This document shows positions 23,024 to 30,345 of a DNA stretch of 64,000 nt, one piece after another. The stretch is from Calcarisporiella thermophila CBS 279.70 (taxonomy: Eukaryota; Fungi; Calcarisporiellomycota): the NCBI RefSeq assembly GCF_041956535.1, contig NW_027192194.1, forward strand, positions 341,444 to 405,443, read 5' to 3'. Under the pieces are notes generated by a model. It was given only the letters and a program-made list of their open reading frames with translations, searched no databases and was not told the origin of the DNA. Every line of letters begins with the position of its first letter. Positions within the stretch are counted from its first letter, which is position 1. Both the position numbers and the translations under genes were made by a program.

Positions 23024-25164
23024 TTACATGTAATCGTCATCATACCTCCGAAACTGTAGATAGAAAAATAAAGTGAAAGCCCCCATGACCACCGATTCAA
23101 ATGCATATACCCATAAGATTTGAGGGTCTACAGACCAGATTGCGAGCAGTAACCCAATGAGCGACCCCAAAGCATTGGTAAAAAGGAAGAGCGAAATGAC
23201 AACAGATCTAATCGAGTAAGTGTAAGTGTTACTGCTGGAGCGAACTCATTTTGTTCTTCAACCTACTTTAGCTCGGGAGTTGCGGCTTGATATGCAAACT
23301 CAAGTCCAGTAATAGACGAGAATAACTCAGAAGTCGCAATTAACACATACGGAATTATTAGCCACCATATTGAGATGTGGTTTACAGGCATTGTTCCTGG
23401 AATGATGTTGCTTATATTGGTGAAGTTGTAATAAGGTGGAGAGTTGTACACAGCTGCTTGCAAAATGGTGACTGTTTCATAAACAAGCAACGCTGATGTC
23501 AAGGAATCATAAGATCTCTATAATAAAGAGCGATAATACCATAAAGAAAGCATATCGAAGTAATCCCAAACCCAATGGATATGCGGGTGATATGACCAAA
23601 TTTGAAACCGCGATTGTGGAGAAAGGGGAAAATCAAAATGTCAAAAATTGGGATAATAATAACCAACACCATGCTGAATAACAAAATGCAATTAGAGCAT
23701 ATATTTTCCAATACTAGGCTTTTTCTTACCTATTAAACACGTTGAGCTGCTCTGGACCGAGCCACGCTGGCCTTTGCATATGGAGTCCCATCGTCACAAA
23801 CTATTGAGTAGAAAAACCTTGTAGGAAAAAATGGCAGAGCAGAAAACTATATTTACGGGCTCACATTATCAAACATCTATAACCTCTACAAGTTAATCTC
23901 GAGTATTAGCCTTCTTTTTTCTTCGTAAAAAGAGACTTACATTATTGTAGAGCGCCCAATATATCGGGTATATCATAAACACTTTGCAAGCTAACCGTTA
24001 AAAATAAATCACTGTTGGGGTGAAAAAGAAGAAAAAAAATCTAATTTGTACATACCTTTTAGAGTGAGCTTGAGATCGTCTACGAATTGGTTATTCCATT
24101 CTAAACATTCATCATCTGACTTGGCATAGTCAAGCCAAGTATATCTTTTCTCCGGGCAAGAGTGATCTTTTCTGAGGCAATAGCCACATGAACTATCATG
24201 TGTTCGCTTAGCAGCAATGGCGTAACGCATGCAATGTAAAACTTTGCGAAGGATCGATCCCCCTGGCGGAGTCATCTATTTACAAGATGGTTACCGGTAT
24301 TCAGACCCCGGGGCTAAATAAAGTACGAACAACGTAGCTCTTCTTGTCGAAAATGAATACGATAATTCCAACGGCGAATATGACGGTCGGAACCAAGTAC
24401 GCATACTCGAACCCCTTGTTATTAGCTAGGAATGGACAGATCACTAAACAAAAGAAAAACAGGTTAGAGATGTTTATCGAAAGGCGCAGATATGTACATT
24501 GTCCCAGGAGTGCTCCGATATTAATAGACCAGTAGAAATAACGGAAAACGCGCTCCAACGTCAACTTATGATCGTGTATGACACGTTTATTTAGCACCTT
24601 TTCATCGGCGGGGACTTGTTCAGCTGCAAACGCTGATACATTTGCCTTTATTCCACCCGTCCCAAATGAGATGAAAGCGTACAGAGAAGTGTAGAAGCCT
24701 AGATGGCGAAAAATATCTGGCAAGTCAGGTAATGCTGATATGGTCAACAGGATAAGTCCTAGCAAATAGTATGCGCAGAAGAAAAGACACACGCGATATC
24801 TTCCAAACCACTGATCGGCTAATACCGCGCCGAGTATGGTTGTTGTATATGCAAGAAAGATAAAACCTCGATTAATGGCAGTGGAGACATCCGGTGGGAG
24901 AAAAAGTTTCTCTATCATATAATGCTGGAAAAGTGTGGATGCACCATAGTAAGCGCTGCGCTCTGCAAACTCGAGGACTACTATGGTGAATACTGAACGA
25001 GGCAGTGGGCCAGCCACACGCGTAAATTTGCATTCATCTCCATCGAATCCATTCTCATCCTCTTCATCAAAGGATTCCCTGGTTGTAGATATTAGATATG
25101 TAGAGGAGGGATCTTTGTGGAGAAATTTGCCACTTGAATCAGTTTCATCTAATTCAATGTCCAT
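23024..25164 (-). CDS. PTR2: POT/PTR family proton-dependent oligopeptide transporter
   Basis: ExxER motif (EFAERSAYYG), GAVLADQWFGRY, GTGGIKANVSAF, FYWSINIGA, ELFSSITGLEFAY; multiple introns, including a 12-nt microexon. Confidence 0.93.
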
Positions 25165-26039: not shown

Positions 26040-28054
26040 ATGGGTGAAAAGGGGAAGAACAAATTGATTACAGCAACCGTTGGGCTCTTCATGGTCCTTG
26101 GGCTGCTGCCCTCGCTGGTCGCAGGACATGGACGCATGGTAGGTTTTTCGTCCCACCTAGTCTCCTAGTCTCTTAGTCTCCATGCTGAACTTCGTTAACC
26201 GTTTTTCTCTGCCTCTAGACTAACCCCCCTCCTCGCATCAAATCTGGCGACTCTGCTGCAAATGATTTCATTGGCACGGAAGGACCCTCCGAAAACTTCC
26301 CATGCCAAGGTCTCCGTTCTGGTGCCATCAAGGCTGCGTTCACCGAAGGCCAAACGATCCCACTCAAATGGCACATTTCAATTGCACATGATGGTAAATA
26401 TCGTCTGTTGTTGTGCAATCTTCTTTTTGTTTTTCTCTCCTCGATGTCAAGACGGTAGTTCTGATGTCATATTGCTTCTCTTCTAGGTCCCTGCCAGTTT
26501 GAGCTTTCACCAACGGGTGACAGTGGATTTCAAAACGGAAAGTTCATCTCTCTACTGCGCATTGAGAAGTGCGCGGAGACAGTGGGTGATTTTGAACGGC
26601 AAGTGACATTGCCCCAAGGAGTAGCTTGCCAAAAATGTACAATGCGATTCCGCTGGCTTGCTCAGTTGCCCGCCAAACCATACCTCAACTGCGCAGATGT
26701 CACTATTCGTCCCGGCAATGGTGGCGGCGGTGGTGGAGGCGGTGGCAACGGTGGCAACGGTGGCAACCGTCAACAAGGTTTTGGTCAAGGGCAAAGACAG
26801 CAGGGCGGTGGTCGCGTTGCAGGCCAGCGCGGGCAATTCAACAGTGGACAACGTCAGCAAGGACGGTCAAATCGAGTCGGTCCGCGTGACTTAATCGCGA
26901 GTGAAGCCTCCGATGTAGAGCATCTTTTGTTCACTGACTCTGCCCTAGATACTTCGCTTGAACGTCGTGACCTGGAACCCCGTGCCAGACGAGGTGGTAG
27001 GAAGGGTGGAGCCAGGAAGGCTGGCGGCGCAGGAGGCAAGAAGAAGGGTGGTGGTGGAGGCAAGAAGAAGGGCGGAGGTGGTGGTGGTGCTGCCGCTGCT
27101 GCTGCCAAGAGAAAAGCCGCCGCTGCCAATGCTAAAAAGAAGGCTGCCGCTGCCGCTGCCGCCAAGCAGAAACAGGACGCTGCAAAGAACCAGGGTGGAA
27201 ATGATGCTGCTGCTGCTGCCGGTGGTGATAACGGTCAACTCAAATCGACTAACGGACTCGAACTTGAAACTTTCCTCAAACGCAGTGATCTTGCAGAACG
27301 ACAATTCCCAGGAAGACAACGAAAACAAGCGGCTGCAGCAAAAAAGACAGGTGGTGCAGCTAGGAAAGCGGGCGGTGCTGCGAGGAAAGCAGGAGGAGGT
27401 GCTGGTGGTGCTAAGAAAGCTGCTGCTGGCGGCAAAGGGAAAAAGAAAGGAAGCGCAGGAGCCAAAGCGAAAAAGGGAGGCGCCGCTGGTGGTGGAGCTG
27501 GTGCGGCCGGTGCTAAAAAAGTAGGTGGTGGCGGCGGTGGTAGAAATAGGAAAGCAGGAGGGGGTGGTGGCGGCGGCGGTGGTGCTGCCAACGGAAGAAA
27601 CAATAACAGAGCTGCAGGTGGTGGTAACCGAGGAAATGGTGGGCAGTTCAATGACCCCTTCAACAACCCGAATGATCCTTTCAACAATCCCAATGCGGCC
27701 AATGGTGACTTCAGTGGTGACAATTTCGGTGGAGCCGGAGGTGACAATGGTGCTGGGGCTGGGGGCGATCCGTTTAACGACCCTACCAACGGAGGATCCG
27801 GCGGCGGTGGTGGTAACGGTGGCAATGACGGCTTTGGCAACAATGGCAACAATTTCAATGATCCTAATGATCCATTCAACGCTGCCGCAAACGGAGGAGG
27901 GGTCCAAAACGGAGATTTCTCCAACAACCCACTGGATATCGGTGGTGATCAAGAGCGTCGCATTGAAAGACTTAAGGCTGCAGCTGATATTGCCAAGAAT
28001 ATCTTCACCGGCGTTACTGGTATCGTCAATGCGGCTACTGGCAAGGGCAAGTGA
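26040..28054 (+). CDS. Secreted His-brace LPMO-like (AA11/AA15-like) domain fused to a long low-complexity, putatively Kex2-processed tail
   Basis: Exons 26040-26138, 26219-26393, 26487-28054. Signal peptide ...LLPSLVAG|H, then HGRMTNPPPR, FPC, second His in IAHDGPCQ, CQKCTMRFRW, YLNCADVTI. Confidence 0.85.
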
Positions 28055-28364: not shown

Positions 28365-30345
28365 CTAACGGTGATCACTTATGTTCTCACGATCAATAAT
28401 ACCAGCCATGGCCAGGATCTCTCTTTCAATTTCAGTGTCTGCGCGTCTTTGTCGAGTGCTTGCTCGCCTCTCAGCTTCTCTTTGTTCAAATTCCCAGGCC
28501 AAGAGCTGCCTTCGTCGTGCATCCTCGCCAGCAAGTCCGAACACCTCTACCTCTAATATTTCGAAATAATATGCGAGGCTGTGCTGCTGCCCGAGTTGGT
28601 GCTGGAATTCAGAAGCGACAAATCCATCCAGTTCGCCAGGAAGATTATCAACAAAGGTGCCTGCCTGAAGAGAGCTGTTCATGGAGAATCGTCCCCGGGG
28701 AGGCGTTGAGTCCTGGGAGGAGGAACGGCGTGAAGTAGGCAGAGCACTATGTAATTTTGGTTTATTTGACCCGCCAAATCGTATCCCAGTTTCCATATCA
28801 CAGTGGATATAATCGGCTGTACTGCCAGAAGTGGGAAACACTTCAAAGTGCGGTGCGAGTTCAATCAACAGAGTATCGCTGCCTGCCCACCCGGCTCCAC
28901 TTTTCGACGATCGTTGCCAAGGTGAAGGAATGTAGGCCGCAATTAAAATAGTGCCCTCATTCGGGCTGACACGGGTATCTTGAGGTGCAATTGCTACGGA
29001 TCCATTAGAAAAATCTGCAGGCGAGCTAAACGAGCTAGGATGTGTAGGGGAGAGTGGGGAGCTACGTGTATCTTCGAGTTTTATCTCCCCCATAACCAGT
29101 AGCAAAGTAGGTCCAGGGTACTGAAACACATGCTTCTCAAACCGATTCATACTAAATCCGTGCTTCTCCCCGGAGTATAAGCGGTGCCAATGGCCATCGT
29201 GCACCACTTTTGTAGGAAGAGCCCAGGTAAGTAGAGTTGTATAGAACGGTGTGAGTATGTCACTCTCATCAATCTTGGGAAGAATCGCTTCAATCATCTT
29301 TGGCGAAAGGGCTGTCAGGTTTCCAAGAAGAAATTTTTCATACAGAAAAGGTGCCAGTACGTCAAACAGATTGGGAGCGTTACGCGTGTACCACTTCGAG
29401 AATGTCGCCCAGTCGAGAGTCAGGAGCTCTTCGCACTCCGGGGTGGATACTCGATTCACTCTGGAGAGCATAAAGCTTTGCACAATGAAAGCCAACCTTG
29501 ATCTGCATTCATTAGAGAAAGAATGCTTATGCGAACTTTCACTGTCGTCAGGAGTCTGGTTAGTGGAGCGTGATTCAGATATCCATAATAAAATGGTGAG
29601 AAGCTCCGTCAAATCACTACATCGCACACAAATAGAATCTGTATTCTCGATTGTCGTCTTATCCTCCTCATCAATTTCACGATCCTCAAAAGAAATCCCT
29701 AGATCCTTAAGTCCGAGTCCCGACGGTTGATGAGGAGCCTCCTCCTGGCTCATCTGCTCAGGTGTCTTTTCTCCAATTACTGGATTTTCTGTTCTCACCG
29801 CATAAGGTGGAGAGGAATGAACCACTGCGATGCTGTCAAATATCAGGCGATTTAACTCGTTTTCCGGTACTATATCCTTTGCTTTACCACAGAGGAGGGC
29901 GAGTGCTTTCGCGAGCGAAGTCTCAGAGAGTGGCACCGGACCCGTCTCTGCAAATGAGGGGTATGAAGCTAGCGCGATGAATATTTTGTAGAGGAGCGAT
30001 CCGCCAACAGCAAGATCATTTGGCAATTCTAGATATTTCTGTAACAAAAAACGTTAAGTGATAGCACATTAGAGCATGCAAAACAAACTTACAACAAAGG
30101 CAGGCTCTTCCAAGCATTGAAATCCATCTGAGAATACAGTTTTTAGCTCATCAAATGTCTGCTTCAAAGCATGCCGTTCCACAGGCTTCAACTTCAGCCA
30201 GAATTAAAACATTAATCAATTTCATTGAAAGAGCACATCATAAATGCGGAATGGGTACTTTTTTCAACAATCGACCCGTCATGAGCTCATTGGCGCTGGA
30301 AGTTGGAGTAGAACTTGATGGTTCAATACTTGATCGCTGACCCAT
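28365..30345 (-). CDS. RTC5: TLDc-domain protein Rtc5/MEAK7-like
   Basis: MG start (myristoylation-like), LYSGEKHGFSMNRFEKHVFQYPGPTLLLV, EVEVFGL, AWEFEQREAERR, EREILAMAGII. Confidence 0.85.

Follow-up and report, generated by a model that had tools for sequence, protein, structure and literature searches.

In this study, the gene at positions 26040-28054 (+) of a 64,000-nucleotide stretch of Calcarisporiella thermophila CBS 279.70 DNA (the window; contig 4 of the 28-Mb assembly) was analysed together with its product, P0001, a protein of 613 amino acids (aa) held in the database as VTP21DRAFT_8416 under the label "uncharacterized protein". P0001 is predicted to consist of a signal peptide, a compact domain with the His-brace fold of the lytic polysaccharide monooxygenases (LPMOs), and a long disordered tail in which two short islands carry sequences resembling cleavage sites of the convertase Kex2 (Table 1). 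Translation of the three exons reproduced P0001 residue for residue, and both introns were of the GT..AG type. A paralog in the same genome, L003:745-1761:-, has no introns and its frame continues through both junction positions; therefore, the splicing of the P0001 gene is independently supported. The whole-protein analyses were all based on the P0001 sequence as held in the database.

Residues 30-166 were identified, from sequence comparison and modelling, as a secreted compact LPMO-fold His-brace domain best matched to families AA11 and AA15. When the domain was scanned alone, LPMO_10 was the only Pfam family above its cut-off (29.2 bits; gathering cut-off, 23), with model positions 83-183 only being matched; the full-length protein scored 19.5 bits, and exon-by-exon scans gave sub-threshold matches only. 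A single-sequence search of the PDB returned AA15 (5msz) and AA11 (9exj, 4mah, and 7p3u) with E values of about 1e-4 and the Y-x-N-C-A motif aligned, and a profile of 17 close relatives matched AA11 7p3u at 1.5e-12 and AA15 5msz at 1.4e-10. AlphaFold2 (AF2), run on an alignment of 56 sequences, modelled the domain with a predicted local distance difference test (pLDDT) score of 95.6. Foldseek comparison with the PDB placed AA15, AA11, AA10, and AA16 on top at a TMq of about 0.7 (maximum, 0.73), and the first 31 matches were all LPMOs. The domain is compact, with 137 aa vs about 200 in AA11.

His30 directly follows the predicted signal peptide, of which residues 3-29 were modelled as a helix in the full-length AF2 run. 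The family alignments show a His here almost without exception, and in the alignment of 56 homologues H30, H90, and Y157 (H1, H61, and Y128 in domain numbering) were each conserved in at least 90%; six Cys residues are kept across the close clade. In the AA11 chains 4mah and 9exj, a His and a Tyr aligned with H90 and Y157, respectively; in the AoAA11 structure these positions are copper ligands. Signal peptidase would expose His30 as residue 1, and H30, H90, and Y157 would then bind copper. A preliminary description of this DNA had proposed a secreted LPMO-like domain with His first after the signal peptide, a second His in AHDG, and the motif YLNCAD, and had named AlphaFold modelling as a check; Pfam, the PDB searches, AF2, and Foldseek agree on this domain, the model of residues 30-166 has the LPMO fold, and the two motifs correspond to H90 and Y157. 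At one position the domain departs from its kin: K155-P-Y157 (window 26651-26703) takes the place of the E-x-Y of nearly all relatives, and the second-sphere Glu/Gln of the AA9/AA11 type, two positions ahead of the axial Tyr, is absent. The same replacement is found in the paralogs P0002, P0004, and L003, which indicates that the K-P-Y change predates the duplication.

The tail (residues 166-613, 448 aa) matched no Pfam family. In the full-length single-sequence AF2 model (predicted template modelling score, pTM, 0.26), pLDDT was below 50 across most of residues 153-580, and no trustworthy contact was seen between the tail islands and the domain; the Atlas model had a mean pLDDT of 0.46. A moderately amphipathic helix (hydrophobic moment, muH, about 0.5) was predicted at residues 578-608 with pLDDT 63-70, and a weak, low-confidence short helix at 352-361 in island 2 of the single-sequence model. 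The fraction of charged residues was 0.23 and the net charge per residue +0.085, with the charges strongly segregated into blocks. Ser and Thr were rare (21 of 448 residues), and the tail is, as first described, neither a carbohydrate-binding module nor a Ser/Thr linker. A glycosylphosphatidylinositol (GPI) anchor was considered and rejected, the C-terminus being polar (...T-G-K-G-K) and without a hydrophobic end. When residues 226-375 and 476-613 were searched against the organism's genome, nothing but the gene itself was recovered, and an Atlas search for relatives of the tail gave no usable match. A weak match to the tail on contig 8 was dismissed; it lies antisense to an unrelated T-box-like gene. 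As judged from sequence and model, the tail is disordered, charge-blocked, and unique in the genome.

The tail of the paralog P0005 aligned significantly with P0001 residues 216-240, and the paralogs stop soon after that point. Based on this alignment, the ancestral form probably consisted of the domain, a linker, and a short acidic C-terminal peptide, with about 350 aa having been added in the P0001 gene. The stop of the paralogs shortly after the equivalent of island 1 would also suit an artefact, in which the tail past island 1 is not translated as annotated (missed intron or alternative 3' end) or is a functionless, neutral low-complexity expansion after loss of the ancestral stop; in addition, repeats abound in this region, and open frames exist on the opposite strand as well as in several other frames. 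We consider such an artefact highly improbable. Exon 3 is one unbroken frame of 522 codons continuing from the LPMO domain, the G-rich tail does not have the T-rich, branch-point-bearing look of both real introns, and its distinct blocks and non-repetitive islands speak against pure slippage. Furthermore, synonymous codons are mixed within the Gly and Ala runs and the DNA repeats are short local units only, suggesting that what has been maintained is the protein sequence and not a microsatellite of the DNA. A hidden intron starting at GTAGGT (27521-27526) was ruled out, the downstream DNA being G-rich and without a pyrimidine tract or branch-point-like sequence.

The two spacers in the islands, ERRDLEPR (E250-R257) and KRSDLAER (K356-R363), are each followed by a Lys/Ala/Gly-rich block, with net charges of +14 and +22, respectively. 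A gapless alignment of the two islands over 13 residues (LDTSLERRDLEPR / LETFLKRSDLAER) scored 31 vs 18.3 +/- 3.8 in shuffles (p about 0.009), the islands having been picked post hoc. Both the likeness of the spacers and the cationic blocks behind them were thus found as the preliminary description had reported them. BLASTP between the two modules detected no similarity beyond the 13-residue junction, and an internal duplication of spacer plus cationic block was unsupported past it.

There are 24 dibasic pairs in the tail, mostly KK and RK. Arg occupies P1 in five of them (RR251-252, RR259-260, KR299-300, KR356-357, and RR582-583), and in-silico cutting at KR/RR yielded six fragments. At the level of sequence, S-L-E-R-R/D and F-L-K-R/S (the slash marking the candidate cut) match the published preference of Kex2, namely Arg at P1, Lys or Arg at P2, and Leu, an aliphatic or a hydrophobic residue at P4 (PMC8528282). 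The early proposal of Kex2-like junctions agrees with this fit, as well as with the enrichment of KR in the tails of close relatives and the presence of kexin genes described below. It further held xDLxxR after KR/RR to be typical of fungal Kex2 junctions, but no such rule is established; the residues reported after KR are EA/DA or XA/XP (PMC6339444).

An exhaustive search of representatives gave 200 homologues at E <= 1e-3 and 28 at E <= 1e-10; word-index homology searches restricted to 337-1072 aa returned P0001 alone. The nearest named relatives were C. thermophila paralogs and proteins of Glomeromycotina (Geosiphon, Racocetra, Ambispora, Entrophospora, Gigaspora, Cetraspora, Dentiscutata, and Scutellospora), several of them bearing a precomputed LPMO_10 annotation, and among named matches the clade is restricted to Calcarisporiella and Glomeromycotina. 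Relatives carry the UniRef name "chitin-binding type-4". LPMO_10 was matched by 51 of the 56 aligned homologues, and PF20238 was touched by 12 of the 56 and by the paralog P0003.

In the tails of 22 close relatives, non-redundant at 50% identity, KR occurred 38 times vs 14.3 +/- 3.3 expected and RK 13 times vs 14.3. For 31 close relatives the figures were 52 vs 23.0 (KR) and 19 vs 22.8 (RK), and for the tails of 105 distant homologues 15 vs 14.6 and 23 vs 14.7. A motif made from the two sites of P0001, [KR]R[SD][SD]?[LI], occurred 9 times in 31 other clade tails vs 0.57 expected, and paralogs have I-I-K-R/S immediately after the domain. The genome encodes 5-6 kexin P-domains, a convertase set unusually large for a fungus. 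The kexin/furin P-domain genes lie in two tight pairs on opposite strands, L012/L013 (contig 5, about 1110032-1112179) and L014/L016 (contig 7, about 757755-759762), plus further copies. The control tails of the distant homologues showed an excess of RR because many of them end in an Arg run. In LPMO_10-like members of this set (P0046, P0048, P0052, P0058, P0075, and similar), Gly/Cys, a hydrophobic stretch, and an Arg run stand at the end, an arrangement resembling bacterial C-terminal sorting signals.

These counts bear on the possibility that the tail stays attached to the LPMO, the dibasic pairs being by-products of Lys/Arg richness and the blocky polyampholyte tethering the domain to charged wall polymers or associating with itself. 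Long tails occur frequently on LPMOs and have no established role (PMC8615602), the known cases work while attached (the CoAA9A dimer, PMC10990093; the basic end of UmAA10, PMC10617569), the charged fraction of the P0001 tail is in the usual range, and most of its 24 dibasic pairs are KK or RK, which are not preferred by Kex2. However, L-x-R-R and L-K-R exposed in a disordered secreted chain should be good kexin substrates, both sites lie in the sole islands that are not of low complexity and are alike, and KR rather than RK is enriched in the clade tails, an enrichment absent from the distant homologues. We regard a permanently attached tail as rather unlikely, and clearly less probable than trimming.

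P0001 is accordingly best described, with about an even chance that the whole description holds, as an AA11/AA15-related mini-LPMO-type copper protein with a lineage-specific disordered tail that would be kexin-trimmed at the island sites and serve as a physical or pro-region accessory. The trimming as such is plausible, and its probability appears slightly better than even. In the late Golgi, a kexin-type convertase would cut the exposed sites after R252 and R357, possibly also after R300 and R583, parting the domain, the Gly/Asn/Gln/Arg linker, and the acidic island from most of the tail. The latter would function as a pro-region or by physical means (masking charges, aiding solubility, or associating transiently with charged polymers of the wall), and would not supply defined peptides of a hormone-like or antimicrobial type.

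Several observations weigh against this description. Inside P0001 itself, RK (7) exceeds KR (2); the candidate sites number just two to five, and their likeness was judged after they had been picked. In the 22-tail set, a sign test per protein gave 9 vs 3 (p = 0.07), and the shuffle statistics overstate independence because the clade tails are related sequences. No orthologue bearing the tail of P0001 was found in the databases searched. For nothing more than a pro-region, a tail that is long, maintained, and structured in its composition would be unusual. Finally, with Lys155 occupying the place of the second-sphere Glu, oxidative catalysis may be altered or lost, and the domain may be a mere copper binder, not an enzyme.

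A related possibility is that P0001 is a true polyprotein, from which kexin would co-deliver a chitin-/cuticle-acting or Cu-binding domain together with functional cationic, acidic DPFN, and amphipathic-helix polypeptides (antimicrobial, membrane-active, or adhesive). The evidence for the sites (island likeness, KR enrichment in the clade, motif count, and kexin genes) would serve this possibility equally, and helix 578-608, with its muH of about 0.5, follows an RR site. On the other hand, near-identical peptide cores do not recur in the tail, each supposed "peptide" would amount to 40-220 aa of low-complexity sequence, KR299-300 falls within cationic block 1, and the tail had no relatives in the searches, hence no sign of selection on the fragments. 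Such a polyprotein seems unlikely to us, and the release of antimicrobial or adhesive peptides from the tail is purely conjectural. Thus, what the preliminary description had observed at this locus was confirmed, and its interpretation held for the domain and the Kex2-like sites; a polyprotein of bioactive peptides was unsupported, there being neither repeated peptide cores nor an orthologue.

The C. thermophila genome has at least 9 paralog loci. Three paralogs have lost the His brace, namely P0005, whose H/H/Y positions are occupied by Asn, Arg, and Phe, and P0018 (L007:1636-2439 (+)) and L018:1530-2897 (-) (contig 6), both with an N-terminal extension and without His1. All three retain the fold-defining Cys and have long charged tails with KR/S sites, and by sequence they look like pseudo-LPMOs. 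Two Geosiphon pyriformis members of the clade, P0022 and P0023, lack both copper-ligand His residues, and their tails are true repeats of Cys-containing units between A-K-R and K-K-K-R/S-L; judged by sequence, they are a clearer Kex2-repeat-like case than the P0001 gene. A wider proposal is that the Calcarisporiella/Glomeromycotina mini-LPMO clade comprises kexin-processed precursors, in which a His-brace (or degenerate) domain carries C-terminal passengers. For P0001, the passengers would comprise a pair of histone-H1-like cationic chains plus one acidic DPFN chain and one amphipathic helix, which would be set free at the same time and act independently (e.g., as antimicrobials, wall coatings, or coacervate formers). 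We regard this proposal as unlikely.

The coordinates of the gene, of the parts of its product, and of the flanking open frames are listed in Table 1. The neighbouring frames show no evident functional link to the LPMO gene.

Table 1. Features of the P0001 gene and its flanks (window positions; a slash marks a candidate cut)
Feature	Position	Strand	Basis or remark
Whole gene, start codon to stop	26040..28054	+	Three exons; product P0001, 613 aa
Exons 1-3	26040-26138, 26219-26393, 26487-28054	+	Translations identical to P0001
Intron 1, GTAGGT...TAG, 80 nt	26139..26218	+	P0001 and intronless paralog L003 agree on junction
Intron 2, GTAAAT...TAG, 93 nt, phase 1, splits Gly92 codon	26394..26486	+	P0001, paralog L003
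Signal peptide, residues 1-29	26040..26126	+	Predicted; basic n-region, hydrophobic core, V-A-G end
LPMO-fold His-brace domain, residues 30-166, split by both introns	26127..26710	+	Pfam, PDB searches, AF2, Foldseek
Candidate copper ligand H30	26127-26129	+	
Candidate copper ligand H90 (AHDG)	26387-26389	+	
Candidate copper ligand Y157 (YLNCAD)	26681-26683	+	
Gly/Asn/Gln/Arg low-complexity linker, residues 167-232	26711..26908	+	Similar kind in paralogs P0002, P0005, L003
Island 1, acidic/hydrophobic, residues 233-258, ends S-L-E-R-R/D-L-E-P-R	26909..26986	+	RR251-252 at 26963-26968
Spacer 1	26960-26983	+	
Cationic block 1, Lys/Ala/Gly-rich, residues 259-340	26987..27232	+	Holds RR259-260, KR299-300
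Island 2, residues 341-368, T-F-L-K-R/S-D-L-A-E-R	27233..27316	+	KR356-357 at 27278-27283
Spacer 2	27278-27301	+	
Cationic block 2, residues 369-475, Lys/Ala/Gly then Gly/Asn/Arg	27317..27637	+	Composition
Acidic Asp/Asn/Pro/Phe/Gly block, DPFN-type repeats, residues 476-578	27638..27946	+	Composition, repeats
C-terminal segment, residues 579-613, after Q-E-R-R/I	27947..28051	+	Predicted helix, muH about 0.5
Upstream open frame, resembling an exon of a PTR2/POT-type peptide transporter	24301-25164	-	Translation, by eye
Downstream open frame, large gene of unknown kind	28365-30047	-	Translation, by eye

Among the publications consulted, dimerisation of CoAA9A (PMC10990093) is the only function given for a disordered C-terminal region of an LPMO. 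P0001 and its clade suggest a testable alternative, in which kexin would trim such tails or set them free. The clade mixes members with intact and degenerate His braces and occurs in arbuscular-mycorrhizal fungi. Secreted Kex2-processed proteins are abundant in these fungi. If processing takes place, LPMO tails are to be considered pro-regions or passenger peptides, and recombinant work in Kex2-containing yeast hosts must allow for cutting; if the passenger proposal is true, these tails gain a function not yet described. If there is no processing, P0001 is an extreme example of a known architecture.

Comparison with known systems showed that the domain shares features with two LPMO families. 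With AA11 (Aspergillus AA11; 7p3u, 4mah, and 9exj), which gave the top profile match and 27% identity in the Foldseek alignments, it has in common the N-terminal His, a second His in an H-G-G-x-C-like context, and the aligned Y-x-N-C-A, and the E-x-Y of AA11 is kept in most clade members; it differs in being about 60 residues shorter and in having Lys in the Glu place. AA15/LPMO_10 (Thermobia domestica AA15, 5msz) came first both in Foldseek and in the single-sequence PDB search, and the N-terminus of P0001 is of its H-G-x-x-x-x-P-x-x-R form, whereas the match to the Pfam model was confined to its C-terminal half and the identity was 21%. Like the X325/BIM1-like proteins (PF20238), P0001 has a small LPMO-like fungal copper-binding module that is perhaps non-catalytic, but it had no PF20238 match even at E up to 10 and has no GPI-type C-terminus.

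The Kex2-processed repeat proteins contain nearly identical peptide repeats between sites, and the residues behind KR form the STE13 signature, EA/DA or XA/XP (PMC6339444, Le Marquer et al. 2019). P0001 resembles them in its signal peptide, the P4/P2/P1 pattern, and the number of KR/RR fragments (six, with at least 4 being required). In contrast to these proteins, it shows no nearly identical repeated cores by BLASTP and no XA/XP STE13 signature, and a folded enzyme-like domain heads the precursor. Because nearly identical repeated cores are lacking, P0001 is not a Kex2-processed repeat protein.

Disordered C-terminal regions of 30 to >1000 aa have been described in all LPMO families examined, with medians of 93-152 aa, and are mostly weak neutral polyampholytes (PMC8615602, Tamburrini et al. 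2021); UmAA10 has a conserved basic C-terminal end (PMC10617569), and the tail of CoAA9A has a basic patch and dimerises through Cys, helped by electrostatics (PMC10990093). The claim in the preliminary description that no LPMO with this architecture was known is therefore too strong. P0001 follows the same plan, a domain followed by a low-complexity disordered extension without a known module, far longer than the 30 residues by which such regions are defined, with basic patches and a charged fraction within the usual range. It differs in that its tail is about three times as long as the family medians, that its charges are segregated into blocks rather than well mixed, that Ser and Thr are very scarce in it, and that it has kexin-type sites in conserved-looking islands, Kex2 being unmentioned in PMC8615602 and PMC10990093. 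A search of the available paper library found no paper joining a natural LPMO with a Kex2-processed C-terminal propeptide and nothing on P0001 or on Calcarisporiella LPMOs. Since LPMOs with long disordered C-terminal regions have already been described, the architecture of P0001 represents an extreme variant, not a new kind. What distinguishes P0001, as read from its sequence, is the length of the tail, the block charges, the Ser/Thr poverty, and the kexin-type junctions; tails rich in candidate cut sites in a small fungal clade are a new feature.

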